From: Amphiscolops sp. MND2022
Lineage: Eukaryota
DNA length: 64,000 nucleotides
NCBI GenBank assembly: GCA_964187785.1
Contig: OZ076417.1
Coordinates: 36,022,001-36,086,000 of the forward strand
Reading direction: 5' to 3'
Part shown: in pieces, positions 6,806 to 48,154 of the stretch
How the letters are laid out: each line of letters starts with the position of its first letter
How positions within the stretch are numbered: the stretch's first letter is position 1
Position numbers and translations under genes: made by a program
Notes under the pieces: generated by a model
Told to the model about the DNA's origin: nothing
Databases searched by the model: none
Seen by the model: only the letters and a program-made list of their open reading frames with translations

Positions 6806-7527
6806 CTTCTGATTTTTTAACCTACGATTCTGGCGCGAGAACCAGCTATGTCGCGTGTTCATCCGCCGAACTGGAAGTACAGTCGGGCAAACCGCAGCTG
6901 AGCTTTGTCTAATTTCATCTTCACTTGCGGCTATCCCAACCAATCATGCCTAGTTTTGTTAGCTGTGCCGGATGTTCTCTCCATCTTCCAACTGATTGAC
7001 AAGTGTTCCTGTTTAAGCATGGAAATCAGAACCCCGTAAAATTCGAAGGAATCTGAAAAGCCAAATTTCTGCACAAACACAGCTATAGTGTTATCGGACG
7101 CATCGACTTCTCTGTGTTGATATTTTCTTGTGACAACGTTAGGAGGGAGTTTTGAATTTAAGTGGACACTCTTCCACCAGAAAATGCCAAAGTGAATATA
7201 AATACGTCTTTATGTATACCTTTATTCCAAGCCCTGAGCGGTTTCTAAACGTGCTATATCTGCATCATGTTTTTGTTACAGGCCATTGAAGACTGTACCC
7301 AACACGTTTCACGATTACCGTCACTCTACTGACAATTGCTTGAGAAATGAAGCCAAGTCATCGAGTACTTGATTAAGTGTTCCATGTGACATGAGAGGCA
7401 GGGAATCATTTGACAGGTAATTGTCTTCCAGTCCTATGAATCTTTTGTCCTGACTACAGTTCTTGAAAGCAATGGTATTTAGGTCACAGTGTCTTGAGTG
7501 GTCTATGATTGGTGATGACCTGGAACT

Positions 7528-8069
7528 CCAAGTGAATTGATCGTTTTAAGATGTAATTAGCGTTTTACATAGTCTGAGTGAACAAAAATGCCAGTACGAA
7601 AATGACCTGGAACTGTTCTTTGGACTCCAATGTGATTGTGAGCATTTTCTTATCAGATCCAAGGTCCAAAATGTCAAGTGATAACCAAGTGAATTGGTCG
7701 TTTTCAGATGTAATTAGCGTTTTACATAGTCTGAGTGAACAAAAATGCCAGTACGAAAATGACCTGGAACTGTTCTTTGGACTCCAACGTGATTGTGAGC
7801 ATTTTCTTATCAGATCCAAGGTCCAAAATGTCAAGTGATAACCAAGTGAATTGATCGTTTTCAGATGTAATTAGCGTTTTACATAGTCTGAGTGAACAAA
7901 AATGCCAGTACGAAAATGACCTGGAACTGTTCTTTGGACTCCAACGTGATTGTGAGCATTTTCTTATCAGATCCAAGGTCCAAAATGTCAAGTGATAACC
8001 AAGTGAATTGGTCGTTTTCAGATGTAATTACCGTTTTACATAGTCTGAGTGAACAAAAATGCCAGTACA
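7528..8069. repeat. 157-bp tandem repeat, about 3.4 copies
   Basis: CCAAGTGAATTG recurs at 7528, 7685, 7842 and 7999; identical ORFs 7565..7834 and 7722..7991 are offset by 157. Confidence 0.95.
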
Positions 8070-8299: not shown

Positions 8300-9802
8300 T
8301 TTCTAGTTGAAAACTCCTCTTTTGTGTTTCTGAAAAAAATTACATTCAAAGAAAGGATGTGCGAATATTTTTTGTTGGCTACATATACATAAAAGGGAAA
8401 GCGACTTCCGACTTTGATATTGAAAGTCTTTCAGCTTGTATTGGCCGGTGATCGTTTTCGTTAGAATCTTTACTGACGTGCGTTCAAGTGCTGTAGGAGG
8501 AGCTGCTTTTTGATGCTGTGAGAAGGTACTTCGGGTCAAGTTAGTAGGAGACGCGACTTCAACCTATTGAAAAATATTTTCTGGAATCTGTCAATGTGTA
8601 TTCTGTAGCATATTCCAGTCCGGTAACTTCAAGGTAGGGTTTATGACTCGCAATTGAGCACGAGATAGTTGATCTGTCTGTCTGATTCAGTGCTGTGAGC
8701 AGAGATCCCTCATTTTTTCGTTTTTGGGGAGAATATCCACTTGCGATTACTCAATTTTGGAGTCCATGGGGGTTATATGGCACCTACTTCCAGTTAGTCA
8801 AAGCAGTGGTTGTACCGCGATCTGCTTGCTGTAGACAAAAAACTGTATCAAAGTTGGATTTGGCGGAACCAGCTTCTTTGCTACCAAATATGGGCAAAAA
8901 ATGTCGACAAAGATCGTACAATGCTCCATTGTTGTTTCCGTGTTAGTTTGCGTCAGCTTGATTAATAAATAGACCGAGTGATTTCCAAATCAGCTTGGCT
9001 TTGACTGTAGCGTTCTCGGGTACGGAAATTTAGTTCCGCGTCAAAAGTTATGCTAAGTTCTTTTGAAGATTTTGAACATCTGATTTCATCTTCTTGAATT
9101 TTCACGCCTTTCACAAACTAGTCATTTTTTTGATATTCAACGACGGGAAACTCCGTTTTGCTGCTGAAAGTTTTTGTGAGGCATGCATCAATTTTGTTGC
9201 AATCTTTGTCAAATTTGCTTCTTCCGCAGTCTCCATTGCTGTGGCGATTGAAGCGTCATCGTGTTCAAAAGGTTTACTGACACAGTCGTTGATTATGTCT
9301 CCGCAGAAATTATGAATAACAATAGTGACAGTACACTGCCTTGTGGCAGACTTACGTTCAGCATGTAAACTTCGGATTTCTAATCGTCGATCTTTATGAT
9401 AACTTATCGTTCATGTAGGACGAATTTTATAGTATCAAAGAATTTCACTGACACGTCGTCTTTCAAAAACTTATACAACAATCTCTCTAAGCATATTGAA
9501 TCAAAGATTCCTCCAGATCTATAAAAAGTGCGATTGTGCAACAATTCATATCTTTGTACGACTTCAAGTAGTCGCCTAGTGTGTATTTGTAACGACCGGT
9601 GGTTTTTTCAACTGAAACTCTTTTGTTCATCATGGAGTAGCATGGCTGATTCCAAATGGTTTGGTATTCAATTCTCTAGGTTTCTTTCGTACAGTTTAGC
9701 ACGTATGATTTGGAGGTAAATGGTCTATAGCTGCTAGCTTACTTGTAATCAATTTCATTAGCTTTCCGCAGGAAAACTACTCACTATTCTTCCCGATGTA
9801 TT
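8300..9802 (-). mobile_element. Degenerate non-LTR retrotransposon (LINE) reverse-transcriptase remnant
   Basis: Minus-strand translation with stops and frameshifts gives SYRPF (domain 1-like), ALFIDLEES (cf. ALFIDLxKAFDS), FEHDDAS (decayed YADD) and KELSITFDAELNF (cf. KxLGITFDxxLxF). Cut at 9802 by the Gypsy LTR. Confidence 0.7.
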
Positions 9803-10993
9803 TGGGGTTAGAGGGAATACGCTCTAGTCGTGTTGACGTGCTGTCAACAACTATATTTAATCTCAAGTGCTATTAACACTAAGTACCAGTACAGTGCTAC
9901 AGTCATTTTGACGTTTGGCCACAAACCATCTATATTTGACAAACAGTACCTACTTAGTTATTTAGTGCAGTCAATCTGACATTAGGTCAACATGTCATTT
10001 CATGCAATACCTTAGTATAGTTATCACGACGTAATGTAGTATTGCGTACATGTAACCACTAGTGCTACCAGTTATTGATATAACCCTTTCTAGTGCTATT
10101 TATAGTTGATGATGTAATATGACGTCATGTCTGCGCTTAGTTATTTATAGTATTATGACATCATTTGTATTTTATTACCATGACACCCCAAATAATGAGT
10201 GTCATGGTCCCCCAACTATATATACAAGGAGTCCGATGTTTAAAGGATCACTTTGTTGATATTGAAACGCTATATACAACCTCTTTGATTTGATTTGATT
10301 AATTGCAAAATTCACTGTTAGAAACGTTCAATCTTCTTGTCATGCCTTCTACCAGGAAGCAAAAGGCCAAAGAGAAACGTTCTAGACAATCTGACGTGAT
10401 GTCAGATATTGAAAACCTCGATGTAATGTTAGGAGCTTACTCGAGAAATGATTTAGTTGAGGATGAGAATAATACAGAACCTGAAGTAGACTTAGAATCA
10501 GGTAGACACCAGCGGAGTGAAGGCCAAACTGAAAATAACTTTAGGTCATTATTGAACACTAACCCGAGTGAAAATAGTGAGGTTACTGTAGAAACTAACA
10601 GGCTAATCAATTCAGAAATTTCTTCCCAAATGTCTCGAAAACTTGAGGAATTGAAAACAGACTTGAATTCTCATATACTTGATGTGATTAACTCCGCATT
10701 AGAGGAAAGAGTGCTTCCAAGCATCAAAAACGCTCTGGAAACCAAGAATTCAGCTAAAAACGTGAATTTGGACCTTCGGTCAGATGGACTGCATTCGAAT
10801 GATTTCAGCCAAGAACAGGCCCAAAGGGACCTAAGGTCATATGGACGGCATCTGGAAAATCCAACCCAAAGGTTTCAGGATGCCCAAAATGACTTCCCTA
10901 GGCTAGAATCGATGAGGAATAACCGTACAAATCATTGTAGAAGGAATTCAATAGATTCCAACAATAGTAATGAAAATGATGATGGTTATGACA
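9803..10993 (+). repeat. 5' LTR
   Basis: Matches 24443-25633 except 9890 T/C, 9974 A/G and 10704 G/A (by eye). Starts TGGGG and ends TGACA, followed directly by TGG. TATA-like TATATATA at ~10217; TGACGTCA (CRE-like) at 10120. Confidence 0.93.
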
Positions 10994-12141
10994 TGGTGAC
11001 AGGAGCCAACCTTACCCCACAAATGGTCCCTGAATTTCTGACCGGACGTCCCACGCAGTCCCGAAATACCAATCCCCATCAACAGTGTGTCAATGATGAC
11101 ACACTAGATAATACCCTACCGGCGCAAATACCGTCAGTCCCTATTAACAACCAGAGGCAACACTCTGAAACACCCCTAGACCCCATTAACCGCCTTGCAG
11201 ACGTAATTATAGGAATGAACAACAAATCTTCTGCACAAACACTGATGGTACGCCCAGTCAATACCGCCACTCTGACATTTGATGGGAAATCCGAAAAATT
11301 TGAACTGTTTGAAGATCTTTTTCACACGATGATAAAGATGCAACCGGACATGACGGAAACAATGAAAATTAATCACTTTCATTCACTGTTGCGCAAAAAT
11401 GCGCTCCAGACCTTCCGTAACATTAGTTCAGCAAACAGACAAACATTGGACGACATACTGGCTGTCTTTCGCCGCAAATATGTCAAACCTGAATCTCAGG
11501 CAACTGCCAAACACAAATGGCACAAACTCGTATTCAACCCGAATACAATGAAATTGCCTGATTTTCTTGAAGAACTCAATCAGGGTGCCGAAAAAGCCTT
11601 TGGCGAACACGCGCAAGCAATGATCGACAGTCTGCTCTATGCCAAACTTCCACCAAAACTCAAACGTTCTGTCAACATGGCGCGATTAGAAAACGCGACC
11701 TATGAAGAAATTGTCACTCACCTAGAACGTGAATTAGAATTAAATGGCCTTGAGGAAGGTGACGACATTCCCGTTCCCACAATGTCCACTGCCCCAACGA
11801 CGACACGTCCGGGACAAGGCCTCCTTTCGTCAGGGATTGACACAGGAACGACATGCAACTACTGCAAAAAACCTGGACACGTCAAAGATGAATGCCGAAA
11901 ACTCAAAAGAAAGGAGGAACAAAAACGCAATGAAGGCCAAAGTACCAAAAAAGAGTACCCAAAGTGCCCAACTTGTGACAAAACGAACCACCCGGCGGAG
12001 CGGTGTTGGAAAGGCGCAGGAGCCCACCTCAAGCCCAAAAACCTCAAATTAGACAACTCTACCTCCGACGACATAACCGCAAGTCATGACGACTCCAATA
12101 ATAAGACAACTACTTCTATCCTTAAAAACTCAAAAAACTAG
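10342..12141 (+). CDS. gag: Gag (599 aa from ATG 10342; first 217 codons lie inside the LTR)
   Basis: Open frame; capsid-like FDGKSEKFELFEDLF; zinc knuckles CNYCKKPGHVKDEC and CPTCDKTNHPAERC. A second in-frame ATG at 10993 spans the LTR/PBS junction. Confidence 0.9.
   Translation: MPSTRKQKAKEKRSRQSDVMSDIENLDVMLGAYSRNDLVEDENNTEPEVDLESGRHQRSEGQTENNFRSLLNTNPSENSEVTVETNRLINSEISSQMSRKLEELKTDLNSHILDVINSALEERVLPSIKNALETKNSAKNVNLDLRSDGLHSNDFSQEQAQRDLRSYGRHLENPTQRFQDAQNDFPRLESMRNNRTNHCRRNSIDSNNSNENDDGYDMVTGANLTPQMVPEFLTGRPTQSRNTNPHQQCVNDDTLDNTLPAQIPSVPINNQRQHSETPLDPINRLADVIIGMNNKSSAQTLMVRPVNTATLTFDGKSEKFELFEDLFHTMIKMQPDMTETMKINHFHSLLRKNALQTFRNISSANRQTLDDILAVFRRKYVKPESQATAKHKWHKLVFNPNTMKLPDFLEELNQGAEKAFGEHAQAMIDSLLYAKLPPKLKRSVNMARLENATYEEIVTHLERELELNGLEEGDDIPVPTMSTAPTTTRPGQGLLSSGIDTGTTCNYCKKPGHVKDECRKLKRKEEQKRNEGQSTKKEYPKCPTCDKTNHPAERCWKGAGAHLKPKNLKLDNSTSDDITASHDDSNNKTTTSILKNSKN
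10994..11005 (+). other. Putative primer-binding site TGGTGACAGGAG
   Basis: Starts with TGG immediately after the LTR CA. 11 of 12 bases match the complement of the 3' end of vertebrate tRNA-Leu(CAG), TGGTGTCAGGAG, as recalled from memory; the host tRNA was not checked. Confidence 0.65.
12132..12138 (+). other. -1 ribosomal frameshift slippery heptamer A AAA AAC
   Basis: Directly precedes the gag TAG (12139-12141). The -1 frame is open from 12126 through the whole of pol. Canonical X XXY YYZ pattern. Confidence 0.8.
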
Positions 12142-15100
12142 ATTCGCCACGGCTCTATATTAATGAAAAACTACGAGTCAGACAATACATCATATCTGAC
12201 CCTTCCACTATATACTATACTGAATACTATTCTTCGCTAAAAGAAAATTCATCTGCTGACTGGCAGCAGCAGGTGTCAAACACCCCTATTAGCCTACTTG
12301 ACTTGGACCATCAGTCCAACAGACTCCACTGTAATACTAGTACTACCCGGCCCCTACCCCTCATAAATGACTATAATCCCTATTACCTTGACCCAGATTT
12401 TGGTTTCGACCCTTATTGGGACATTCAGCTCTACAACCAACATCATCTTCATTTCTACAACAATTACCATAAGAATCCCATGGAAATTGAACTTGATTCA
12501 TATGACATCGACCGAACCCTCAATTTAACCCTGACCAAAGCTCTCGTAGATCCCTGGCAATATAATCGCACCACCACAACTTTACCAATTCCAGAAGAAT
12601 CAATAACCAAACCTTCCGAAGAAGGACCTATGGTCATGCTGACTGCAGCCGTTGAAGAACGCTTTGTGAACACGCTTATCTCAAGAGCCGGTGAACCCGA
12701 TTACGTCCCTCTAACGACAAATTTGGGACTCAAATATAAACGACGCATGCTCTACTTTCCAATGGATTTCGGCGAACTAACTTTAGATGGCCTTGTAGAC
12801 ACGGGAGCATTATCGAGCGCAATCCCAGAAGCTGATCTACGTAAAATCCGACTATTAGCCCCTCAGTCAATCATCAAAGAGGGCCCAGCTCCTAACTTCC
12901 AAATTATGGTAGCTAATGGACAGCTGGAAACTCCCAAGAGCACTGTCGAACTCAAATTCGAGGTCGGGGACATCGATTTTCACGAGATTTTCATAGTCAT
13001 GGAGAAACTCACAAGTCCATTAATTGGCCTTTCGTTCCTTCAACGAAACAATACCATACTTGACATGAGACAGGGAGTCCTAAACTTTCCGTTCTTTTCC
13101 ATGCAATTAAAAACCGCGGACCACAAATACACTAATGTCATGGAACCAATTTGCACCCGGGAGGATATCACTATCCCTCCCAATGATAGACATATGGTAT
13201 CCATGTGCTCACAAATGTACGAGGATACAACCGTCACTGGAATTCTTCAACCGAGCAATGACCTCGCGGAAGATGGTGATATAACCTTCTGCGCCGCTCT
13301 AGTCACACTGACCCAAGGTCAAGCATCAATTCATGTGAACAATTTCACCGATCAGCCTTACACCCTCAAACGAGGTTCCCACATCGCCAATTTCTCTGTA
13401 CTAACTCCAGAACAGTTGAAATACGTCAAACCTATCGACCCTGTGACCACTTGGCATCTTCTACAGGATAATCCTGAAAATGCCGTTTATTATGCCAGTA
13501 GTCTGATTAAATCTCCGAAAGCCGAAGACAACAGCGAAAACTATTGGTTTCCTACTCCAGAGCAACCAGGAGATCCTCAGACGCATACCCCAATACAACA
13601 AAGAATTCTCAAAGAATTGCGAAACTTGCAAGAACTAGAGAAACTCAACCCCCAGGATGACCTGGAGTCTAGAAAACAGTTTCTCGCCAACTTTGACTGG
13701 GCAGACTCGACGTTGAACCCAACTGAAATTGCCCAAATCGAAGAGCTTCTTGTCGAATTCCACGACATTTTTGCACGACACCGCTTTGACATAGGGATGA
13801 ACGAGGACTTCAAGGTAAAATTAACCCCTAAAGACGACTCCCCTGCCTACAGTCAAAGCTTGCCTACACCCATCAATCTCAAAGAGGACATCCTCGTCGA
13901 ATTAGCCCTTCTACACAGATATGGGATCATAACAACGCTTCCGTTTTCCAAATATGCAAGCCCCATTTTTGCTCAGAAGAAACCAAATGGCAAACTACGA
14001 CTCCTGGTCGACCTCCGGAAGATCAATAATTTGATCTCTGATGATTACATCAACAATAATCACCCTGTCAGCACACTAACGGACGCTGCCCAACATATGG
14101 CAGGCAAACGATTATTCTGCAAATTGGATTGCTCTCAAGCATATCACTGCCTTCAGATGGCAGACCAGAGGTCAATTGAGATGTTAGCCTTCAACTTTGC
14201 TAGCAGAACCTTTGCCTATCGCAGACTTGCGCAAGGTCTAAGCAGAGCCCTATCCGCCTTTTCGAGCTTTATGCGCGAATACCTGGACAAGGTGATTAAA
14301 GCGGATCAATGCGCACAGTACGTAGATGATATTGGAATCGCAGCCAACAACGCGACACAACTTATCAACAACCTACGAGCGACCTTTGAGTGCATCAGAA
14401 CCGCTGGTCTCAAATTGACAATGCATAAATGTCACTTCGGAGCCAAAGAAATTGACTTCCTGGGACGCACCATCACCCCTGAAGGAAGGAGGCCACAACG
14501 ACCCAGGGTCCAAAACTTCCTAGAGAAAACGAAATTTCCAAAATCCAAAAAAGCACTTCAACGATACTTGGGCTTCCTGAACTACTACCGCAACTACATT
14601 CCAAGACTTTCAGAAAAATTGACCCCCTTTTTCAAATTATTGAAAAATGATGCTAAAGTCATGGTGACGCCCGATCTGTTAGAACAATTCACCGAGATCA
14701 ACAAAGCTCTTGACCGATGTTGTGAACTTGCGCTCAAACAACCCCTGCCTAATAAACAAATAGCTCTAATGACAGATGCTAGTTTTTCGGCAGCAGGTTA
14801 TGCAGTTCTCATCGAGGACGATCCAATGGAAAAATATTCATCGACGCGGAAAGCCTTCGCACCTGTAGCATATGGATCCAAGACCTTTAGTCCCGCACAA
14901 CTGAAAATGTCCATCTACGCCAAAGAGTTCTTAGCAATATTCTTTGCCTTCAAGGAATTTGGACATATCTTTTGGGGGACTCCGCAACCGGTGATCATTC
15001 TGACAGACAACAAGTCGGTCACTCGCTTTTTTCAGACTAAAATAATTCCACCTACCCTGTGGAACGCGTGTGACTACGTTATTCAGTTCAATTTCACAAT

Positions 15101-17306
15101 CGCTCATATTCCTGGCAAAAATAACACCGCCGCAGACTATCTGTCTCGTCTAGAAATCTGCCCTAAAGAGAAACTCATACTCCGCATACGGGAAGACATA
15201 TCGACAACGCCCATCGAACTAAATGTGCAATCCGCCGGAGTCACTGAAGAGGACCAGATATTCTACACTGACGATAATGAAGAAACTGAAGAACAGATAT
15301 GGCAACGGAAGAAAGACGCCAGGTCAAACCCGACAAATCAATTACCTGACATCACCCTAGGAAAACTCAGTGCCCACACCACTGTCTTTTCACATCAAAC
15401 AACTTTACAAAGACTATCAAACCCCACCACCATGGCTATTGAACAACAAAATGATGTGGTATTGCACCAGTTACGTCTCAAACTGCAGAAAGAAGAATAT
15501 TCGGAGACGATCCTTAAACAAGATTCGCGCTACAGACATTACTGCAGTCAAATTGACCGTCTGTCCGTCCAGGACGACGTCGTCCTTAGAGACTATTATG
15601 ACGAAACAGGAAGCGTCCAATATCGTCAGGCGCTTTTACCCAAACACCTCGTGTCAGAATTACTCCAATCACTGCATGGGACAGCACATAAACATCCGGG
15701 AATTTCCAAGATGCTTTATGAAATCCGTCAAAAATATTACTACCCTGGAATTGCAAAAATTGTCAAAAAGTGGGTCCAAGGATGTGAAACATGCATTAAA
15801 GATAAACGAATCAAAAACCCATCAATAACACCTGAACTTCTTAATTTGCCTGAATGGGATCTTGGCCCGGAAGACGCATTACAAATTGATCTTCTACCTA
15901 ACCTCCCACCAAGCGGGGGATATGAAAATGTTATTACTGCCCTGGATGTCTTTTCAAGATACCTGTTCGCTTACCCTGTAGCCGACGCATCGGCCTCCAC
16001 TACCGCAAAAGTACTTATTGATATCATGACAAGGCATGCATATTTGCCAACAACTTTGATCACTGACAAAGGAACTGCCTTTACGTCTCGTCTAGTCGAT
16101 GAAGTCACAAAGATCCTAGGTATCCAGATCAAATGTGCAACAACGAAACATCCTCAGACAATAGGTAAATTAGAGAGAACTCATGCAAGTCTTAAAGGCA
16201 ATCTTAAAATGGCTTCGGGTGAATACCGGCGCCAATGGCACAAATATTTACCATTGGCTGTTCTCAATTACAACACAACCTATCATTCCAGTCTAGGATG
16301 TGAACCATCCAGAATTTTTCACGGTAGAGTGCCTTACAACATCCTAGACCACAGGTTGGGATTAAATCCCAACCCGAAAATCCTACCATCAATGGATTTT
16401 GCTGAAGAACTACAAAGACGTACCCAAATTTTGATTGATAGAACAAAGAAAAATATCATGCAGTCGTACTTAAAATACAAGGAATATTATGACCGAAAAG
16501 CTAAAGCAGCCCCGTTACACCAGGGAGATTATTGCTTTATATTACAGCCGTTAGCCGACAATCAAGGATCCAAAATTCCATTCCGTGAATTCAGGTGGAT
16601 TGGACCGTACGTCATTGAAAAGGTCCTACCGAATGAAAACTACATTGTCCGAAAACTCAGCTCTAACAAAACGCAAATTTTACACAGGATACGCTTGCGG
16701 AAATACGTTCCAAATACGGAATTATGTGATGTGCGACCAGAAGGAAATTTACAAGCTGATGATGAAATTATTATACCTCAAGACGACCTTTATATTATCT
16801 CGTGGGAGACTGAATTTGCCGAGTTTCCCCCTCATCTTGATACAGGAGACACTCCTGATGATTTTCCGATGAATTCTGACCAACCAGATGCTATAAACAC
16901 GGATTTGGACCTTCGGTCCACTAGACGTGACGCCAATTCTAACGACAACGCCGCTACACCGCGCGAGCACCAAAATAGCGATATTGACTCAAGGTCAACC
17001 GGACCGAACAAAGATACTGACTCAGCCGTCACCGAGCAGCCGGCTGAAAATTCACCTGACATGGACCTTAGGTCAAACCGACCACAATCAACTACAGATC
17101 CAGAAATAGAAGAAATGCCTTTCAAAAGCCCATCGGAAATGCCAAACTCCGATTTTTCAAACTCTAGCGGGAAGAATATTTCCGTGCCCGATTTATTAGA
17201 AAGAGAAGATGACGAAAAGGTTGTAGAAAATGAAAGCCCCAGGGGAGGCAAATATAATCTACGTCCCAACCCTACTCCAAACTTTACTGATGAATACAGA
17301 TACTAA
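12132..17306 (+). CDS. pol: Pol polyprotein (protease, RT, RNase H, integrase), probably expressed as a Gag-Pol fusion
   Basis: Protease LVDTGALSS; RT LVDLRKIN, KLDCSQAY, YVDD; RNase H TDAS, EFLAI, TDNKS, AADYLSR; integrase HGTAHKH..CETC, QIDL, TDKG, LERTH; GPY motif; C-terminal YNLRP. No chromodomain seen. Confidence 0.97.
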   Translation, partial: KKLDSPRLYINEKLRVRQYIISDPSTIYYTEYYSSLKENSSADWQQQVSNTPISLLDLDHQSNRLHCNTSTTRPLPLINDYNPYYLDPDFGFDPYWDIQLYNQHHLHFYNNYHKNPMEIELDSYDIDRTLNLTLTKALVDPWQYNRTTTTLPIPEESITKPSEEGPMVMLTAAVEERFVNTLISRAGEPDYVPLTTNLGLKYKRRMLYFPMDFGELTLDGLVDTGALSSAIPEADLRKIRLLAPQSIIKEGPAPNFQIMVANGQLETPKSTVELKFEVGDIDFHEIFIVMEKLTSPLIGLSFLQRNNTILDMRQGVLNFPFFSMQLKTADHKYTNVMEPICTREDITIPPNDRHMVSMCSQMYEDTTVTGILQPSNDLAEDGDITFCAALVTLTQGQASIHVNNFTDQPYTLKRGSHIANFSVLTPEQLKYVKPIDPVTTWHLLQDNPENAVYYASSLIKSPKAEDNSENYWFPTPEQPGDPQTHTPIQQRILKELRNLQELEKLNPQDDLESRKQFLANFDWADSTLNPTEIAQIEELLVEFHDIFARHRFDIGMNEDFKVKLTPKDDSPAYSQSLPTPINLKEDILVELALLHRYGIITTLPFSKYASPIFAQKKPNGKLRLLVDLRKINNLISDDYINNNHPVSTLTDAAQHMAGKRLFCKLDCSQAYHCLQMADQRSIEMLAFNFASRTFAYRRLAQGLSRALSAFSSFMREYLDKVIKADQCAQYVDDIGIAANNATQLINNLRATFECIRTAGLKLTMHKCHFGAKEIDFLGRTITPEGRRPQRPRVQNFLEKTKFPKSKKALQRYLGFLNYYRNYIPRLSEKLTPFFKLLKNDAKVMVTPDLLEQFTEINKALDRCCELALKQPLPNKQIALMTDASFSAAGYAVLIEDDPMEKYSSTRKAFAPVAYGSKTFSPAQLKMSIYAKEFLAIFFAFKEFGHIFWGTPQPVIILTDNKSVTRFFQTKIIPPTLWNACDYVIQFNFTIAHIPGKNNTAADYLSRLEICPKEKLILRIREDISTTPIELNVQSAGVTEEDQIFYTDDNEETEEQIWQRKKDARSNPTNQLPDITLGKLSAHTTVFSHQTTLQRLSNPTTMAIEQQNDVVLHQLRLKLQKEEYSETILKQDSRYRHYCSQIDRLSVQDDVVLRDYYDETGSVQYRQALLPKHLVSELLQSLHGTAHKHPGISKMLYEIRQKYYYPGIAKIVKKWVQGCETCIKDKRIKNPSITPELLNLPEWDLGPEDALQIDLLPNLPPSGGYENVITALDVFSRYLFAYPVADASASTTAKVLIDIMTRHAYLPTTLITDKGTAFTSRLVDEVTKILGIQIKCATTKHPQTIGKLERTHASLKGNLKMASGEYRRQWHKYLPLAVLNYNTTYHSSLGCEPSRIFHGRVPYNILDHRLGLNPNPKILPSMDFAEELQRRTQILIDRTKKNIMQSYLKYKEYYDRKAKAAPLHQGDYCFILQPLADNQGSKIPFREFRWIGPYVIEKVLPNENYIVRKLSSNKTQILHRIRLRKYVPNTELCDVRPEGNLQADDEIIIPQDDLYIISWETEFAEFPPHLDTGDTPDDFPMNSDQPDAINTDLDLRSTRRDANSNDNAATPREHQNSDIDSRSTGPNKDTDSAVTEQPAENSPDMDLRSNRPQSTTDPEIEEMPFKSPSEMPNSDFSNSSGKNISVPDLLEREDDEKVVENESPRGGKYNLRPNPTPNFTDEYRY

Positions 17307-17496
17307 CCAGACATGTAAATTAAACTCTTTATAATGACCACTCTACGAGGCCCAGACTAACAGTACGTCTTCTGGACTGAATGAAATGGTATCAGTAAAG
17401 GAACGAAATACGAATGAAAGCAATGACATAAAACACCCACACAGAATAAATAGACAAATGTACAAACTAAAGAATGCAATTGTACATAATGTACAA

Positions 17497-20400
17497 TTAG
17501 AGTTTAGAACTACTAGGGGTCAACAAGGCTTTAGCTGACGAAATCATTTCCTTATCGGGTGACTGCTGATTGGGTCGCTTGCTGCTCTTTTTGGGAGACG
17601 ACTTGGACGCTCCGGAAGCCTTACTGCTCCCTGCAACTTTACCGACAGCAATGCTGACTGAGGGCTTGGGTCTGCTAATATCAGAAGTTAGCTGTTCAAG
17701 AATCTTCGAACGTCCAAAGAAGTCAACGCTGTCCCAGGGGCAATAAGTATCGCTCATTCCACCATCAATAAAATCAGGCTCCAGACGAAGGAAATCAGAT
17801 ACGGATTGATCGGTAGTAACAGCCTCAATACTGTGGGGTACATTAGCAAAATAAGATTGAACAGGTAAAATTACATCAATATGACTGCTAGTCGGGTTGT
17901 CAGAATCAACTGATCCAAATTTCACGCTGGGTAAAACAGGAAAAGGCTCATCGAGGCACAGGCACGCCAAACGAAACAGCTTGAAGAGCAAAGGTCGACT
18001 ATGCAGGATAGGCAATTCAACAAGAAATTTGACTGTATCAGGTATCAGTAAAGTAGGCTGCGCCAGGTCAGAGTAAGTACGCCTCAGATCATCCACAAAT
18101 GACAGGTATTCTTCACCACTCGCAGTCTCTTGTTCCATAGTAAAATGGCCCCGCAGTCGGAAACTAGTAAACAACTGGGTGTGACAGTAAGTTGCGTGTG
18201 CTATGGGTCCAAGCAGGATGATTTCCAAGTCAAAGCAACCCAAGCCTTTAACGAGGTCATTAGTTAGCCCCTTCAGTCCTTGGAACGAATTAAATAAAAA
18301 GGTGACGTAACTGCGTGCTGCCCTTCCAAACTCTTCTTTATTCTTGTCAGACAGTGCATCGATGGATAGACCTGCGTTGCATTTTTCCAATTTGTCGTAT
18401 CCAGCTTTGATCTTGCAAGCTGCGTCTAACTTAGAACCAAACTTGGCTCGAGAAAGGAAATTCTTGACACTGAGTGCAGTTGTAGTTCCCAAGTCCAAGT
18501 CGAGGATTTCAGGCCAATTTTCCTCTGGAGGCAAATCTTTTGGCGAAGAACATCGTCGCGCAAGTTTGAATAGAAATTGGCAAAGTTGACGGTAGGTGTA
18601 AAATGACCTATCTCTTCGGCCCGACAGACTGAGCGAAAAGGCATTAGCATCTAAACGAACCTAGGAATCAGTTTGAAGAGACCAAATAACGATGAAAGGA
18701 AAGAAAGGAGCACTAACAATCCCGTGTTAATCGTTGGAACAATCCTAGTCGACAAGTGAAAAGTTCATCTCCAATGATCGACCATTCCAAATTCTGCGGC
18801 TAGAAGCAAGAGACATATTACAGCTACGAAGGGATTTGAGTATTTGACCAAAAGTCAGTTTGACCAAATTCCTACCTGATTATGCACCCCTTGCATCTGT
18901 TGCTTGAGCGAATACGTAGTAAGAAACTCTACAATTGACTTCCAATTCTTCATCAATTCCTGACAGAGGATATGCAGTTTAGAGACGTCCAGCTGACATG
19001 TTCTAATCGCCTACAAATAACACAGTCATTTAGGCCTAGTCTTAGTCATGGAAACCCAAAAACAATGCAAGACTCTAACCTTAGATAACTCAGGGGATAG
19101 CAAGACGCACTCCATGTCCAATCTGCCGCCAAGTGAGACAACTAAGTACTTTAGGGTGGAAAAGAAGTCAATTCGTCCAAATACAGAATAATTGTCCTTG
19201 TGCATCAACTTAGCTAGTGACACCTCGTCGAATCGCTTGAAGCTCTGAACTCCCAATGTAAATAGAGGACTCTCGTCTAATTCTTGGACAAAATCGAGCG
19301 AACATCCACTAGCACAAACTGGACTGGGACGCGTTGAGATAGCGCCCAAGAGGCTGGAGAAAAGATGTTTTTCAGCTTGGGTTTGTCCGCCAGTCCGCCC
19401 TGTCCTTTTCAAGACAACACGACACAGTTGGTTGTCTCGCCAGAAACGCACGTGCATAAAGAGGAATAGGCCTTTCAACTCAAACTCAACGGCAAACTGT
19501 CCTTCAGCCACAATGTATTGCCCAAGGTCATCCAACAATCGCACGAATATGTGATGGAACAGGACCTGAAAACACAAATCCAACATACTAACAAGGGGAT
19601 TTGAAACGTAACAGCAAGTCAGGATAACGGTAGGGCTAAGTATGACCTAACTCATGAAAGGTATCAATATATTGGATGGTCTAGTCAATTAGACACTGAG
19701 TCGCAAATTATTTTATGAAGACTTACTGAGAGGCGTTCTTTTCCCCAGTTGAAGTCAGAGAACAAAGCCTGGTGGTTGACGACTACTCCAATATCCTTCC
19801 ACAAACTGCGTAAAGACCTAATGTCACCGAAGTTAGGAAGAAAGTGGCCCAAGATCGAGATCTGTACGCGAACTCTGTTTTCAGAGGACGACGTCATGTG
19901 GGTATTCCCTGCCATAGCCTCATCGTAGAATGGCAGTTTCTCTCCGATGTCAACGAGAGTCACATCCTTGAATTTGGGATATTCAAGTTCCAATTCGTAC
20001 GGTGTCAAGAGTTTACCATTCTCGTCTCTGACGTAGTGACGAATCGTCTTGGTGACTGGATCCTCCACAGACAGGTGTTCGTACCGCCATCGTTGGTCTC
20101 TACGAAGGTGGCGCTCCGTTCCGTGATGTCTAAGAATTTCCTTGACGCCCCTGCCATAGATGGACACGTTCCCCTTACAAATTTGACAGTAAAATTTATA
20201 GGGGTTCCACTTAGGATCCATTGGTCCGGTAACAAAAGTTCTTGCCCAGCTTATTCCTTCAAATAGCTCTTCTCGCATCACCTTGTTAGACCTCCACACG
20301 GGTTTCTTTTTCTTTGATTTAGTAGCGGTGGGACGCTTGGAACCCTTTTTCTTTTTGGTTTTGGTCACTGCAGCTTCACGTTTCAACTCAGCCAAGGTCT

Positions 20401-21730
20401 GTGCTCCTGGACTGTCAGCGGTTTTCTCCAAGGCAGGGGACCGAAGGTCATTTCGACTGCACCCAGGTACTGGGGGACTTGGAATGTTGATCTCCGATGC
20501 CCGACTGGGAGTTTGCTCGCGAGAATGATCGGTGGTCCAAAAGTCACTTTGACCAGATGGGGTCCTGTGACGGAACGTATACCGGTCAGTTTCTGAATCT
20601 GTACCAGTTGATTGGACTGACTTTGGCCGATGCATACTTTTGGCGGAATGAGGACTTTGGTTCAAGTTGAGTTGACTCGCCTTCTGTATGAGACTGTTCA
20701 TCATCCCAAAGGTCGATTTTGCTGTCTCGTCAGCAACCACTTTCAGCATTTGGCACATCTGTTCCTGGTTAAAGGCGACAGTCGGGTGCCCTTGTGGTAG
20801 ACTTATGGGATTTGTTTCAGCAAAACACTTGCGAATTATCTCCCTACTGCTGATTGAGATAGGTGCTTCTCTAAATGCTGCTACGGGTGCCTGTATGGTT
20901 GACTCATAGTCAGACCCATCGCTATTACAAGTGAGGTACTGAGTCTTGGGGGGTGCTAATGCTTCTGCTAACGTTGACCGAGCGTAACGGGTAGAGTCAT
21001 GGTCACTTAAGAACGGAACTTCAGTCTCACTGCCCGATTGTGTCTCAGCTAAGTGACGTTCGTGTGGTTCTAAGGACGTAGAGTCAAGTTGACAGGATTC
21101 ATTCTCATTCCGGATGGACTTGTGTTTCACTGCTGGGGCAAATGTAAACTCATACGTGTCAATAACCTCGCTTGGCTCAATGTGCTTGACATCAGGGTTG
21201 TTGACCGCGCTGATGTATTTGGATAGGGAAAGAGGCTGTGTTTGCTTTGAAGAAGCCTGGCCATCGGGACTACAATTAGGCCGCATGACAATTGGTTCGC
21301 TTTCACTCTGTTTGACCTTGCCATTGGTCTTGGGTGTAACTTCAGGTTGCCCAGACTGTTCCATCTCGTCTAGTTTCCTTGTCACATACGCTCCAAAACT
21401 CTCATCAGAACCAGTGCTGCTATTACTAGTAAATCCGCTTCTCCTTCGAATTTCAGCAAATATCTGCGCTTCTTCAGACTCAGGCTCAGTTTTCATCAAC
21501 GTGACTGGGGGTAGAGCAGACTCAATGTCTGTGCACTCAGGACTGGATAAAGTGATCTCGATTACCTCAATCTCATCACTTGAAGTTTCTTCAACTGCTT
21601 CTCTACGAACCAAGCTAGGAGAGCTCGTGTCCATTTTTTCTTCCATATCTTGAGCTGGTTGGCCAGTTGTTTCATTTTCTAAACGAAAGGAAATGAATAA
21701 TCGCGGTTCGCTTCCTGCAAAAATATCCAT
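17497..21730 (-). CDS. Antisense five-exon gene: zinc-finger, probable catalytically inactive hAT-transposase derivative (~1286 aa)
   Basis: Exons 21730-19727, 19565-19080, 19010-18876, 18799 (or 18793)-18718 and 18650-17497. Introns of 161, 69, 76 (or 82) and 67 bp are all GT-AG with matching phases (0,0,0,1) and give one open frame. CxxC..H..H finger at 20188-20108. The start codon is uncertain (21730 or 21646). Matching junctions are present in the paralog at 3650-8092. Confidence 0.85.
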
Positions 21731-23465
21731 CTTGCCGCATTCAAATAACTTCCGGAAGTAGATTTGAAATTTCACACATCTTAGTATGTTTTCACGATGG
21801 AGGAAGACTCTTAGTTAAATGAAAGCCCTGATCAAGCTAAAATTTAACGATTCAAAAAGAACCAACCTGAAGATACTTCCATAATGGAAGGTCTGAACTC
21901 AGCTCAAAAGCAGCAGTAAACTGTTGTATCGTATGGTTTCGGTAGCTCCTTCCTACAACGCTGGGTGATGAGACTTTCAGTCGGATTGATGAACCAGAAC
22001 AAGCGATGATAACGCAATCAGTAATCACAAAATCAATTTTAGTCTACAATTCAAAAGAAACGGAATCAAAATAGTGAAACAGACTAGTGCAGTAGACTGA
22101 TCTAAAGGAGAAGTCGAATTTGATGTGTTTTCCAGTGCGTAACAAGGATTGAAGGAAATGACACAGTCCCAAGGTCAGAAAGACAGTATTAAATTCCTGA
22201 TGGAAATTAATACAGCTTAAGTGATGCTACTCGGAAACTGTAATCAATTACAACTGTCAACTTTGAACGGTTAGACCAAACGTATAGTGAACAACTATTA
22301 ACGAAGGTATCCAAATGACGTAATGTACGCTGTGTTCCGCCTGCAATAGATTAGTGTTTACATAGTCTGACTTTGCACTCATTTATTATTTACTTAATGG
22401 GACAATAAGTCCACTTGACTACAAACGCTTACATGTACTCAGCCACCAGTGGAATAGGACAGGTGATAATAGCAGCCCACTTTCTTCCACATTGTGACGT
22501 CATCCATGATGAAAGACCACAGGTCATTCAGACTACACTAATTTACTTACATGTACACCCCGGACTATTGAGACCGAATTTTTTCAACTGACAATAATCA
22601 ATTAATGTACCTTGCTTTATTACCCAACATGCAGTGCATTTACCTCACCCAAGTATTTCAACTCATTCAATGGAACGTAATTAGTGGACAACACGTTCAA
22701 CAAAAGCACTAACCACGTTTAATTGAAAATTTGCACATTAAATAAAATTTCAACGAGAGCCGTGGCTGAAAATAAATTATTTAGAATTAACTTATTCCTC
22801 AAAATTATGTCAATCGGAGTGAAATTACCAATGATCGTGCGTACCGAACCTGCCAGTGAAGTACCCCTAAAAGTGCATCATATTAGTAATTTAACCCTTC
22901 AACTATCGGTCAGATTAAACTTACTACCTTATATAACCATCACATGCATCAATCAAAACATTACCTCATCACGTTCAATTTTCATCCAAATCACCGCTTC
23001 ACCTTATCAAATTTCATTTTATTTTATATTCGTCAAACTTATCTGATTGGCTATCACAACTGCTGCGGTCACATAGACCGATGGTCTTTGATCAACATTG
23101 TTGACAAATATTAAAAGTGGTAAACGACTTAACAACCTGTTAACACCGCTTCATAGACCTTTGAAGAGGAAAGCCAAATAAAACTCAAGGACTACTTGAC
23201 GACTGGAAATCTCACCCAACCGTTAAGTTGTTGATGTCCCATTCAGCCAAATCTACCTAAAATAGGAATATAAGGAAAATGGTGTGCGGGGTTTTCCTTT
23301 TAGTCTTCCCGCAAATTCTGAGATTAGACCTTAGGTCAGAAGGACCATATCACTTCATTCTCACATCTACTCAGCTGAAAATCAGTCTCACGAGATCTAT
23401 AAATCAAAATTGCCAAGAAAATACTACTCAGCCGCTACAACGGGAGAATGTCCCTCCAGTTCACC

Positions 23466-24275
23466 ATGGAAGAACGCCCCAGATCGCCAGTCAGCCTTGA
23501 GTACGCCTCTTCTGATGAGGATATGGAGGTGGATTCAATCGCATCCGTTCAAGATCTGCTGGACAGAGAACAAGACGAAGACGAAATACAAGTGTTGGCA
23601 TGCTTTTATGAAAAACCTCCGTTCCCTCCACAGCTAGCTGCAGGACGTGCCATGACAACAACTTTGACTGAAAGTCTGAATGACCTCAGCTTACCAGCAG
23701 AAACTCTTCCGGATACGATTGGCGATTTCACCGAACCTTCTGAAGAATTAATCAACTGGGCTGTAGGTCATCCTCCAGCCTCCTACTGTGCACAGAATGT
23801 GGATCAACACCCGATTGCAGTGTGTAGTCAACTTGATCCGGTTCCAGCAACTCCTGCTTCACCCCCGTTAGTCGACCAAATGCCGCACTATCAATATGAC
23901 AGCCAGCAACAGCACGAGCAATATACAGATCAATGGGCTCAGAACCAGCACATCACAGGGTTGGCAATTTCCGTGAGTGGATATTGCGGGCAACCAAACG
24001 AAACCTATCACTCGGGATGTGTGGTCTGTGGGAAATCTTTCCCCGAAATCAGAGAGGAAATAACTCTGGGCTATCTAGAAGGATCACATGTCAGTGGAGA
24101 AACATACGATCAGAGGATGGCCAAACGACGGGCTTTTCAAGCGGGAATGCGGGCAGGCTCATTTGTCTTAGTCCCCCGGGGAGTGTCACAGGCTGCCGCC
24201 TGTGACGGCATTTTGTATCAAATCATGCCTCAAAACTGTCAAATTAACCCCGGACCTGGGGTACTGCCAATATAG
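23466..24275 (+). CDS. Orphan accessory ORF of the Gypsy element (269 aa, acidic N-terminus, CVVC motif)
   Basis: Uninterrupted ORF between the antisense gene and the 3' LTR; no signal peptide or transmembrane segment evident. Confidence 0.65.
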   Translation: MEERPRSPVSLEYASSDEDMEVDSIASVQDLLDREQDEDEIQVLACFYEKPPFPPQLAAGRAMTTTLTESLNDLSLPAETLPDTIGDFTEPSEELINWAVGHPPASYCAQNVDQHPIAVCSQLDPVPATPASPPLVDQMPHYQYDSQQQHEQYTDQWAQNQHITGLAISVSGYCGQPNETYHSGCVVCGKSFPEIREEITLGYLEGSHVSGETYDQRMAKRRAFQAGMRAGSFVLVPRGVSQAAACDGILYQIMPQNCQINPGPGVLPI

Positions 24276-24442
24276 AAACTGGAACAACCCATTTACAATG
24301 TTAATTACAATTTTACATGTATTCGTTGATTTTAGTAGTATTTAGTAAATAGCCTGACCATGAAATCTGATATTCTACTGTTTGGACTTAAGGTCAAACT
24401 GACCGCATCAATATACTCACAGTATTCACTTGACGCCTGATA

Positions 24443-25633
24443 TGGGGTTAGAGGGAATACGCTCTAGTCGTGTTGACGTGCTGTCAACAACTATATTTAA
24501 TCTCAAGTGCTATTAACACTAAGTACCAGCACAGTGCTACAGTCATTTTGACGTTTGGCCACAAACCATCTATATTTGACAAACAGTACCTACTTAGTTA
24601 TTTAGTGCAGTCAGTCTGACATTAGGTCAACATGTCATTTCATGCAATACCTTAGTATAGTTATCACGACGTAATGTAGTATTGCGTACATGTAACCACT
24701 AGTGCTACCAGTTATTGATATAACCCTTTCTAGTGCTATTTATAGTTGATGATGTAATATGACGTCATGTCTGCGCTTAGTTATTTATAGTATTATGACA
24801 TCATTTGTATTTTATTACCATGACACCCCAAATAATGAGTGTCATGGTCCCCCAACTATATATACAAGGAGTCCGATGTTTAAAGGATCACTTTGTTGAT
24901 ATTGAAACGCTATATACAACCTCTTTGATTTGATTTGATTAATTGCAAAATTCACTGTTAGAAACGTTCAATCTTCTTGTCATGCCTTCTACCAGGAAGC
25001 AAAAGGCCAAAGAGAAACGTTCTAGACAATCTGACGTGATGTCAGATATTGAAAACCTCGATGTAATGTTAGGAGCTTACTCGAGAAATGATTTAGTTGA
25101 GGATGAGAATAATACAGAACCTGAAGTAGACTTAGAATCAGGTAGACACCAGCGGAGTGAAGGCCAAACTGAAAATAACTTTAGGTCATTATTGAACACT
25201 AACCCGAGTGAAAATAGTGAGGTTACTGTAGAAACTAACAGGCTAATCAATTCAGAAATTTCTTCCCAAATGTCTCGAAAACTTGAGGAATTGAAAACAG
25301 ACTTGAATTCTCATATACTTGATGTGATTAACTCCGCATTAGAAGAAAGAGTGCTTCCAAGCATCAAAAACGCTCTGGAAACCAAGAATTCAGCTAAAAA
25401 CGTGAATTTGGACCTTCGGTCAGATGGACTGCATTCGAATGATTTCAGCCAAGAACAGGCCCAAAGGGACCTAAGGTCATATGGACGGCATCTGGAAAAT
25501 CCAACCCAAAGGTTTCAGGATGCCCAAAATGACTTCCCTAGGCTAGAATCGATGAGGAATAACCGTACAAATCATTGTAGAAGGAATTCAATAGATTCCA
25601 ACAATAGTAATGAAAATGATGATGGTTATGACA
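24443..25633 (+). repeat. 3' LTR
   Basis: Direct repeat of 9803-10993 at offset 14640. No clear polypurine tract upstream; the purine-rich GGGGTTAGAGGGAA lies just inside the repeat. Confidence 0.93.
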
Positions 25634-25956
25634 GCAGAAAATTGAAACTTCCTGCATTACCTGCAATTGATAGGCAAGCTATTGCCGCGTGTTGCTCAGC
25701 ACGCCCTTCGCCTTTCAGACTCGTGGAGGATAAAGTTTTTCAATGGGCATACCCTTGCTCAGTGAAAGATCGAAACAAACTTTCTACAAGAATATTCGAA
25801 CTTGCGCGCGACGTGGGCCTCAAAGTCCCCAGAAAGTATCTTTCTATTCCACTCGACGGTTGGAAAAGACCAATAAACGATCAATGTCACATGTCTTACA
25901 TTTTATCTGATAGAAACAAGTTGTTCTCTTGGGAAAGTGTCGTAGTTACTGACTGA
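24982..25956 (+). other. Chimeric ORF (324 aa): LTR-encoded Gag N-terminus fused in frame to flanking hAT transposase remnant
   Basis: Identical to gag up to ..DDGYD at the LTR end, then continues ~107 codons containing RPSPFRLVED and YLSIPLDGW. Expression is unknown. Confidence 0.6.
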
Positions 25957-27290: not shown

Positions 27291-29127
27291 AAGATACGTA
27301 TCCGCATACCTGAAGAAAAGTGTTACTCAGAAAACTAGTCAAAACCACAAAAACTAAAGCAGGTCGCTGTGATTAGTCTCAGAGGCCTCTCAGCGGAAAT
27401 TTTCTTTTCTTCTAACTTCTCTTGGAAAACCTCTTGTTCGGGTGTCGTTGCAGTGTAAGCTATTTAAGGTTCATCAGATCATGAAAAACTCGAAAAATTT
27501 TGTATTCAACGTTGGGTTTCAGATGGATTTTAGAAGTTTCAGCTACAGTTTTTGGTCCTTTCTTCGTTGGCAGAAGATTTTTGCCTATCTTGATGGCGAG
27601 GATTCAGCTATGTATACTTCTGTTCAGGTTTCATCATTTTGCAGTAAACAATGGATGCAATTCCGTTCCAATAGACTTGAAGGAACTTGAAGGAGTTCGT
27701 TTATCGACAGAGGTTTGTTGCTGTTGTCAGTGTACTCGAAATTTAAATTACTAAAAATGTCGTGCCAGATCAAAACTTCTTGATTTGGCAGGAAGTTCGT
27801 ACTGTTCGAACAGAATAGTTGATACTGAATTGTTCTTCGGATGTTCAATGAATGATTGTTGATGCTCAGTCGTGGAAGCTCAAACTACTTCCAATTGACC
27901 AAATCCTTTTTTTTAGCCACGACATAATTGAGTTTCTCATTGGTTAGAAGCATCTTTTCGGGCATGACCTTACGTTTTCCATTTTTCAATTTGAGTTGCC
28001 TATGCTTAGACGTGCCCTTCAATGTTTCCTGTTGTGAAGAATGGGGGCGTGAACTCAGATGATCGAGTTGGTAGGCTCGTTGATGTGAACCTTCCAGTAC
28101 AGTTCTAATTCTCTAAAGTTGTCCATGGCATAAATGCGATGACAGCTGACGATTCAGTCGCAAAGTGTTTCAATATAGAGCCTTCATTCGGTAGCAGTGG
28201 ATTGAGTGACGTGTACAGTGCTTTGTCTAATATCTTCGACTATTTTGGGCGTTCAGAGATTGTGGAATCCCCTGACTCTTCTGGCATTCGTCATAAGTTG
28301 CATTCGTCTTTGCTGTCGGATGTTTTCGGTTGTTTGGAGCACCCTAAAACTTTCCGTTCCCCCAAAACAGCATTGTATATTAGCTGATGTCAATCCTGCT
28401 ACGTCGACTAAAGAGCTTGACACCTGTCAACCAAGCTGTCAGAGCATTTGTAGGACGTGTCGTCGAAAGGAACCCCTTTCCGGGAGCGGACAAACGGACA
28501 GTGACGGTGAAAATTGTAGACGTATCTTCAGATTTATACAAGTCGCCCACCTTGCAGACGCTATACATTTAGTGCAGGAGGCCGGCCCTCAACCAGGAGA
28601 AGAGTAAAGCCACAGGAACTCAATTTACGATTTTAGTTGTTGAGATATCTTTTATCTTTTTGTCGATTGTTTTTCTTTTCTTTTGTTTCTTTTGTTACTT
28701 TTAAATACTTTCTGTAGACCAGTGCTTTTCTCTTCAGATACGCTGATGACTCGCAATGGGTTGAAAAGGTTTCAATAAATACTTGAACATTGATACTATT
28801 TTTCCAAGCTTTGGATATCATAGCAACTTTTTTTGAAACTTGTTTCTACCGGTCAACTGGGATAGTGGCTGGCATCAGTAGTTTGTTGGCGTTGAGATTT
28901 GTTTTTGTTGAGATTTGTTCAAATGATTCTTTCATGTTTCATGTTTTCATTTCTAAAATGTGTTGATGAATGATTTTACCGCTGTGACTATTGTAGCATT
29001 GGTTTTTGTGAGAACATACAATAACGTCAACCTATCTCAAAATTTTTGCTATCGAGCTATTGCACCCAGTTTAGAGCAACTGCCCACGCAGCATAAATTC
29101 AACATTATTTGGTGATCCTCTCGACGT

Positions 29128-47735: not shown

Positions 47736-48154
47736 CGTTTTACAGAATTTATACAAACTTGAAAATCTTTATAAAGGTTTCGCCAAATTTAGCTGTGAGT
47801 CATTCGGTGGAATTGAAAATTGAACCTAGGACTATGAGAAGGTAAATTTTCTGTCTAAACAAGACTTAGTTCTCTGAGAGTTTCTAAAGCCTTGTCGTAA
47901 AGGTTAACATTATCATATTGCTTAGTTTTAAACAAACCACGCTTCGAATTAAACAACAGACTTCGAATTTGAATCATCCCAAGTGAAATATCATTATTAG
48001 ACGTCACAATCTCACTAAAATATTCGCAGGGAAGATAAGATTCGCTCACTAAAGATCTCCCGAGGGGTGCCAATGGTTGATGCTTGAGATCGCTCTGGTT
48101 TCAGTGTGATGATTCGGGCTTACTGACTATTCCTTGGGAACTTTCTTTTTCGCA

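Follow-up and report, generated by a model that had tools for sequence, protein, structure and literature searches.

A Ty3/Gypsy-type retrotransposon lineage in Amphiscolops sp. carries a five-exon antisense gene, probably a captured hAT-type transposase that lost its catalytic triad

The window analyzed here is a stretch of 64,000 nucleotides (nt) from Amphiscolops sp. MND2022 (assembly GCA_964187785.1, contig OZ076417.1, positions 36,022,001 to 36,086,000 of the forward strand); all positions below are numbered from its first letter. It contains a young Ty3/Gypsy-type long terminal repeat (LTR) element of ~15.8 kb at ~9800–25633. The element displays gag and pol genes, a third sense open reading frame (ORF) termed ORFX and, on the opposite strand between pol and ORFX, a gene of five exons whose predicted product has similarities to hAT-family transposases. 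The features of the element are listed in the order of their position.

9800..10993, plus strand: 5′ LTR, direct repeat with 24440–25633; a TG..CA form would begin at 9803
10303..12141, plus strand: gag, a 612-codon ORF with zinc knuckles and weak DUF1759 and Retrotrans_gag matches
10994..11011, plus strand: sequence like a primer binding site (PBS), begins TGG directly after the 5′ LTR and lies within the gag frame
12273..17306, plus strand: pol, 1677 codons, with protease, reverse transcriptase (RT), RNase H and integrase
17497..18650, minus strand: exon 5 of the antisense gene, 383 codons and the stop; a predicted all-alpha domain precedes a basic tail of low confidence
18651..18717, minus strand: intron 4, 67 nt, GTTAGT..TTTAG; absent in P0153 / L048
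18718..18799, minus strand: exon 4, 82 nt
18800..18875, minus strand: intron 3, 76 nt, GTAGGA..TCTAG; absent in homolog P0171
18876..19010, minus strand: exon 3, 45 codons
19011..19079, minus strand: intron 2, 69 nt, GTTAGA..TTGTAG
19080..19565, minus strand: exon 2, 162 codons; N-terminal half of the predicted RNase-H-like fold
19566..19726, minus strand: intron 1, 161 nt, GTAAGT..TTTTCAG; absent in P0080 and P0083, kept in frame in P0121, P0122 and P0104
21730–19727, minus strand: exon 1, 668 codons beginning with the ATG; codes for a conserved N-terminal motif, a long region rich in Ser and Pro, a basic stretch like a nuclear localization signal (NLS), the zinc finger and a helical region
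20108..20188, minus strand: zinc finger within exon 1, C515-x2-C518-x16-H535-x5-H541, with ligands invariant or nearly so in 35–36 homologs
23448..24275, plus strand: ORFX, 275 codons, conserved throughout the lineage; flanked by the antisense gene and the 3′ LTR
24440..25633, plus strand: 3′ LTR, direct repeat with the 5′ LTR

The two LTRs are direct repeats of 1194 bp that differ at four positions (99.7% identity), and the PBS-like sequence adjoins the 5′ LTR, as in Ty3/Gypsy elements. The pol domain order by Pfam is protease, RT, RNase H and integrase, which is that of the Ty3/Gypsy group (Metaviridae). The Pfam matches are RVT_1 (E-value = 8e-23), RT_RNaseH (4e-15), Integrase_H2C2 (1e-14) and rve (5e-12).

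Three minus-strand ORFs are present downstream of pol, at positions 19685–21775, 19026–19586 and 17497–18534. The earlier sequence-only reading of this DNA had joined these ORFs and two short exons through four small GT–AG introns into a frame of ~1286 amino acids (aa) that lies tail-to-tail with pol, and direct reading of the nt sequence confirms this model. The joined exons total 3906 nt, which is a multiple of three, and show one terminal stop codon only; the translated sequence is 1286 aa. The start ATG is at position 21730 in the context gcaagATGg. All four introns (161, 69, 76 and 67 nt) have GT..AG ends with a pyrimidine-rich tract before the AG. The gene terminates 190 nt from the pol stop codon at position 17306. 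A five-exon open frame of this kind is far beyond chance.

The antisense gene is not confined to this locus. In the 1.07-Gb genome, exon 5 has at least 107 scored matches of 7867 first-look candidates, with identities from 100% down to 50%, and 57 of the 107 are free of stop codons. Fourteen diverged copies (exon 5 identity 85% to 50%) were sampled with 10 kb around each, where each locus covers the antisense-gene side or the gag-pol side of the element and not always both. In all loci that cover the gene, it faces the 3′ end of a pol sequence that is 74%–91% identical to that of the window, and an ORFX homolog is found upstream of the gene. Where the other side is covered, both gag and pol are seen in every sampled locus. 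All 14 copies thus agree, within the covered parts, on the arrangement gag-pol, antisense gene, sense ORFX. The tail-to-tail order is also kept in L047, a more distant lineage in another assembly of apparently the same species, with a pol identity of 69%, and in a contig of a different sample (L048), with a pol identity of 67%. The sequence-only reading had raised the question of whether the gene always sits between pol and the 3′ LTR, and this position held, where covered, in the 14 sampled copies, L047 and L048. The family as a whole is broad, as an exon 5 profile matches 635 clusters at 50% identity. Public homologs are all unnamed single-exon ORF calls from ENA assemblies.

Ratios of nonsynonymous to synonymous change (dN/dS, Nei-Gojobori) are low throughout the element. 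For exon 5, dN/dS is 0.08–0.21 over all pairs in which dS is unsaturated. Comparison of the window with locus L034 gives 0.12 for aa positions 1–568 of the antisense protein, which are mostly disordered, and 0.09 for the C-terminal half of pol; the proportions of nonsynonymous and synonymous differences in ORFX are 0.12 (pN) and 0.78 (pS). Exons of the antisense gene, with values of ~0.1 across genomic copies, are not evolving neutrally, and all four element genes are constrained. The antisense protein is 40%–85% identical over the same loci where pol is 74%–91% identical, so that its divergence is about three times as fast as that of pol. ORFX shows 41%–77% identity among the sampled copies and has a Cys-rich stretch. 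It has no known domain in Pfam and no usable match in the ESM Atlas.

The four intron positions, their reading phase and their GT..AG ends are kept in seven diverged copies, with intron lengths of 63–211 nt; in this comparison a few junctions fall outside the search windows. The layout recurs with GT..AG signals in copies that are just 50%–85% identical in protein sequence. Homologs that lack single introns provide a further comparison. In P0080 and P0083 (3.2-kb metagenome scaffold) exon 1 continues directly into exon 2, and neither an intron nor an indel interrupts the predicted junction. Exons 3 and 4 are fused directly in P0171, as are exons 4 and 5 in P0153 / L048. Since the homologs without intron 1, 3 or 4 are colinear across the predicted junctions, three of the four junctions are confirmed by comparison. 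In P0121, P0122 and P0104 intron 1 is present as an in-frame read-through. Precise absence of single introns would be compatible with spliced antisense mRNA being occasionally reverse-transcribed.

Four runs from one sample, none of which is recorded as RNA, gave short genomic contigs at high repeat depth that are unspliced across introns 3 and 4. One odd joint of low depth in these DNA runs (18804 to 19733) is unlike the gene model. The DNA runs neither support nor contradict splicing. By the established rules of splicing, the genomic RNA contains the introns as their reverse complements, which are not splice substrates; the introns are thus inherited through reverse transcription. Removal would occur only from a separate antisense transcript, which would then be translated. 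The antisense gene is almost certainly real and element-borne.

The antisense protein was modeled in two parts, with the N-terminal half spanning the finger to exon 2 and the C-terminal half consisting of exon 5. The N-terminal half is an AlphaFold2 model of the intron-less homolog P0083 at aa positions 485–832, built with 67 aligned sequences. Its mean predicted local distance difference test score (pLDDT) is 69.6, with values of 75–89 across the strands. The model displays a beta-beta-alpha zinc finger, a hairpin and helices, followed by the order beta1-beta2-beta3-alpha1-beta4-alpha2, which as predicted is the first half of an RNase-H-like fold.

Searches with this model point to the hAT family. 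With Foldseek, the ten best chains in the PDB are all of the Hermes transposase (E-values 8e-4 to 2e-2). The top matches in AFDB Swiss-Prot (E-values 5e-5 to 6e-3, probability 0.98–1.0) are hobo, ZK1098.2, SCAND3, ZBED4, ZMYM6, FAM200B/C, EPM2AIP1, ZBED5, ZNF618, RICESLEEPER and Ac. A shape search of the ESM Atlas returns clusters with DUF4371, FAM200-ZBED5_RNase-like and Dimer_Tnp_hAT annotations, at template modeling (TM) scores of 0.40–0.46 over 180–212 residues. The structural matches reach beyond the RNase H core to the finger and the helical region that precede it, and the sole long match of the C-terminal half is to the part of Hermes that comes next, so that the order is kept. The protein has an N-terminal BED/C2H2-type zinc finger, as judged from ligand conservation and the predicted beta-beta-alpha shape, and a predicted RNase-H-like core after a hAT-type helical region, arranged as in Hermes. 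The C-terminal part (exon 5) is predicted to be all-alpha, and the hAT dimerization domain (PF05699) is unrecognised in it.

The sequence-only reading had described the protein as colinear with hAT transposases and had proposed a structural comparison with hAT-family proteins. The comparison, made with the homolog-based N-terminal model, places Hermes and ZBED proteins among the first matches. Colinearity is partly borne out by the fold rankings and the order of finger, helices and RNase-H-like domain, but finds no counterpart in the Pfam and PDB sequence profiles. By predicted structure, the closest resemblance of the part from the finger to the RNase-H-like domain is to hAT transposases of the DUF4371 / FAM200 / ZBED5 / ZMYM kind. 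Descent from a hAT transposase is considered probable.

The zinc finger ligands are highly conserved: the first Cys is found in 34 of 35 homologs, and the other Cys and both His residues are invariant. The catalytic positions of the RNase-H-like domain do not show an intact DDE triad. The middle of beta1 holds Glu in 30 and Asp in four of 37 homologs. Just after beta4, at the site of the second Asp in DDE enzymes, Gly is found in 34 of 36 within the motif S/T-G-C/S. This Gly means that the triad is not intact. The C-terminal stretch R-P-x-L...F-x-L-x-C-L-C ... P-x-V-K-F-G-S lacks a conserved acidic residue at the place of S-E-R-x-F-S in hAT proteins. The sequence-only reading had called the protein catalytically dead and its first catalytic Asp missing. 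The first of these statements stands insofar as the triad is not intact; the second does not, as the beta1 position holds a conservative Glu. Loss of transposase catalysis appears likely.

The reading favored here is that of a four-gene Ty3/Gypsy lineage with a captured hAT-type transposase, lacking the DDE triad, on the opposite strand. Several results weigh against it. Pfam shows no hAT match for the antisense protein at E-values of ≤ 0.1 or ≤ 10; the sole Pfam match is a sub-threshold zf-C2H2_ZN292 on the finger, and zf-BED is unmatched. Hidden Markov model (HMM) profiles of both halves, run against PDB sequences, find no Hermes and nothing relevant. The family profiles DUF4371, DUF659 and Dimer_Tnp_hAT likewise do not recognize the protein. 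A six-frame search of the genome for DUF4371 gave no match, but neither did the control genomes, and it carries no weight either way. Feature searches of the ESM Atlas gave no usable match for exon 5 and only leads at 0.86–0.91 for the finger region. The N-terminal model is built on the homolog P0083, which is 39%–51% identical to the corresponding pieces of the window. An aligner independent of Foldseek ties Hermes with other RNase-H-like folds, thus the geometry alone shows an RNase-H-like fold. The specific hAT assignment, for which the Foldseek and Atlas rankings and the architecture are the basis, is partly supported. The assignment of catalytic positions follows the topology of the strands and the order of the motifs rather than a residue superposition. 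Transcription, splicing, localization and DNA binding of the antisense product are all inferred. With these points taken into account, the favored reading as a whole is still held to be fairly likely.

A protein with a finger and an RNase-H-like fold could have arisen without hAT descent; its source could be a different superfamily of transposases, a second copy of the RNase H or integrase core of a retroelement, or a gene of the host. In that case the high rank of hAT proteins would reflect only a shared fold beside a finger. Such an origin is unlikely, as three libraries, searched by Foldseek or by Atlas shape, independently rank hAT-family proteins first and almost exclusively, and the matches are not confined to the core: they include the preceding finger and helical region, and in the C-terminal half the next part of Hermes. 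A related possibility is that the protein is a still-active nuclease or recombinase with non-canonical acidic residues, i.e. the Glu residues of beta1 and alpha1 and the Asp where alpha2 ends, which would serve the element at the DNA level. The modeled segment has conserved acidic residues at positions 213 (E/D), 251 (E) and 283 (D), each in 34 of 37 homologs, and purifying selection is strong. An active enzyme is nevertheless very unlikely in view of the Gly after beta4 and the C-terminal motif without a conserved acidic residue; in addition, pol already encodes an integrase.

Two further explanations concern the gene rather than the fold. The gene could be a passenger, i.e. an old nested insertion or a transduced gene of no service to the element. 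Transduced sequences can occur in LTR elements, and the faster divergence of the gene relative to pol would fit a passenger. Against this, the gene has the identical place and orientation in all sampled lineages, down to a pol identity of 67%–69%, its dN/dS is ~0.1, its splice sites are kept, its frames are open, and flanking inverted terminal repeats were not found. A passenger is accordingly rated as highly improbable. The model could also be an artefact of joined ORFs that are never expressed as a spliced mRNA. This is the least credible of the alternatives and can be nearly dismissed, as intron-less homologs read exactly through three of the four junctions, splice signals and phase are conserved at ~50% protein identity, and purifying selection acts on all exons.

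With respect to the favored reading of a captured hAT-type transposase, the ~16-kb lineage carries gag, pol, sense ORFX and the five-exon antisense gene between pol and ORFX. The 1286-aa product is predicted to consist of a disordered Ser/Pro-rich N-terminus, the basic NLS-like stretch, a CCHH finger, helices, the RNase-H-like domain and a large all-alpha C-terminal domain. It is most likely a hAT-type transposase that was captured and lost its DDE triad. The basic stretch just before the finger may act as a nuclear localization signal. The protein may bind DNA through the finger and the helical region and may be a nuclear accessory, regulatory or targeting factor needed by the element; this DNA-binding regulatory role is the likeliest one for the protein but a tentative suggestion, somewhat short of probable. 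Constraint together with fast divergence would fit a lineage-specific recognition module or a conflict with host silencing. A more speculative and rather doubtful extension is that the retrotransposon lineage domesticated a DNA transposase as a fast-evolving, lineage-specific DNA-recognition module, and that spliced antisense mRNA was sometimes reverse-transcribed and recombined back into the element. Such a module might direct where the element integrates, promote transcription of the element itself, or oppose silencing by the host. Under this proposal, the scattered precise absence of single introns would be due to the recombination of reverse-transcribed mRNA into the element.

The antisense protein is predicted to share, in this order, a finger, helices, an RNase-H-like domain and a large helical part with hAT proteins and their domesticated kin (Hermes, hobo, Ac; ZBED4/5, FAM200B/C, ZMYM6, SCAND3, EPM2AIP1, ZNF862-like). 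Many domesticated hAT members are likewise without an intact DDE triad. Unlike hAT proteins, the antisense protein has no detectable sequence-profile similarity, its dimerization domain is unrecognised, and it has ~490 extra N-terminal residues. The gene also differs in that it lacks terminal inverted repeats and an 8-bp duplication and is inherited inside an LTR retroelement, rather than as a DNA transposon or a single-copy host gene.

The HBZ gene of human T-lymphotropic virus 1 (HTLV-1) is an antisense, spliced deltaretrovirus gene that encodes a small basic leucine zipper (bZIP) nuclear regulator and is transcribed from the 3′ LTR. Both HBZ and the gene described here are antisense, intron-bearing genes of reverse-transcribing elements, and HBZ is a nuclear regulator. 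Unlike HBZ, the present gene encodes a 1286-aa transposase-like product and is set off from the 3′ LTR by another ORF.

In plants, the Ty3/Gypsy lineages Retand and Grande have additional ORFs in antisense orientation after pol and before the 3′ LTR; most of these contain a Transposase_28 (TRP28) domain, and they are proposed DNA binders (PMC11963269; for background see PMC8220671). The earlier statement that antisense extra ORFs are known in some plant Gypsy lineages is therefore correct. As in Retand and Grande, the element in the window has an opposite-strand gene in a long region between pol and the 3′ LTR that is conserved across the lineage; for the plant elements, DNA binding and regulation of the element have been proposed as its role. 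The products are unrelated by Pfam, as Transposase_28 (PF04195) has no match in the antisense protein, which displays a predicted hAT-like fold and is from an apparently animal genome. Four introns are conserved in the antisense gene, whereas the text on Retand and Grande in PMC11963269 has no mention of introns; it names HTLV-1 HBZ as an analogy. Full-text literature searches, incomplete in coverage, brought up neither a transposase-derived nor an intron-bearing antisense gene for any animal LTR element. Antisense accessory genes of LTR retroelements are thus already known, and what is notable here is the hAT-like origin, if correct, the four conserved introns and the animal-type genome.

Other sequences within and around the element were also recorded. 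No inverted repeat with one arm on each side of the antisense gene was found, and a nested DNA transposon was rejected as an explanation of the gene because no inverted repeats flank it. A decayed older copy of the antisense-gene family is present in the plus strand on both sides of the element, at 3516–4892, 6807–7407 and 27952–28270. It shows many stop codons and 25%–57% identity, and no related pol adjoins it within the window. The young element appears to have inserted into this decayed copy.

A target-site duplication was not found at the insertion, where the flanking pentamers are GTATT or GATGT on one side and GCAGA on the other. The flanks of the LTRs are unequal (9795–9802 compared with 25634–25638), and recombination between copies is one possibility. 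An LTR longer than called is ruled against, as the sequences upstream of 9800 and of 24440 show no similarity. The first ~230 codons of the gag frame are inside the LTR (10303–10993, and 24943–25633 in the 3′ LTR), and in the 3′ LTR this frame continues into flanking DNA (ORF 24943–25956). L047 likewise has a gag N-terminal match (GAG aa 13–150) at the 3′ LTR position. A weak dUTPase match at pol residues 293–374, between protease and RT, is sub-threshold (E-value = 6e-4, 20 bits, cut-off 22). A dispersed 19-bp motif was sought in the internal region through exact matches, and no 11-mer is present more than three times.

Three of five gag-side loci show the last 27–30 residues of ORFX ~0.65–0.8 kb upstream of gag (L033 3803–3883, L037 5315–5404, L041 3918–4007), which is the spacing from ORFX to the gag piece of the 3′ LTR in the window. 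This is due either to LTRs that start further upstream in these loci or to tandem elements that share an LTR. The 5′ flank of the element in the window shows no similarity of this kind.

Elsewhere in the window, positions 7528–8068 consist of three tandem copies with a 157-bp period that are 98%–99% identical. Just after the 3′ LTR, 25636–25956 (plus strand) has an LSIPLDGWKRP stretch that resembles the first-Asp strand of a hAT transposase and is unrecognised by Pfam. A gag fragment of another retroelement is at 30401–31033 (plus strand; DUF1759, E-value = 5e-12). A 441-codon ORF at 41014–42339 (plus strand) has near-threshold matches to a FLYWCH finger, a MULE transposase and a RING finger. 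Two adjoining plus-strand ORFs at 46638–47735 and 48134–49012 each have a KH domain and an AKAP7-type 2′-5′ RNA ligase-like domain (E-values 9e-55 and 9e-17).

The domestication of transposases is usually ascribed to host genomes. Here the apparent beneficiary is another selfish element, as a class I element seems to keep the scaffold of a class II transposase, stripped of catalysis, as a selected accessory gene. The locus also shows how introns can persist in a retroelement, and for annotators it is a reason to avoid the blind masking of such loci. The family described here has conserved introns, a recognizable fold and clear purifying selection, and as an abundant, young and diverse animal family it offers natural replicates for the study of the functions of antisense accessory genes, which are also known in plant Gypsy elements and deltaretroviruses.

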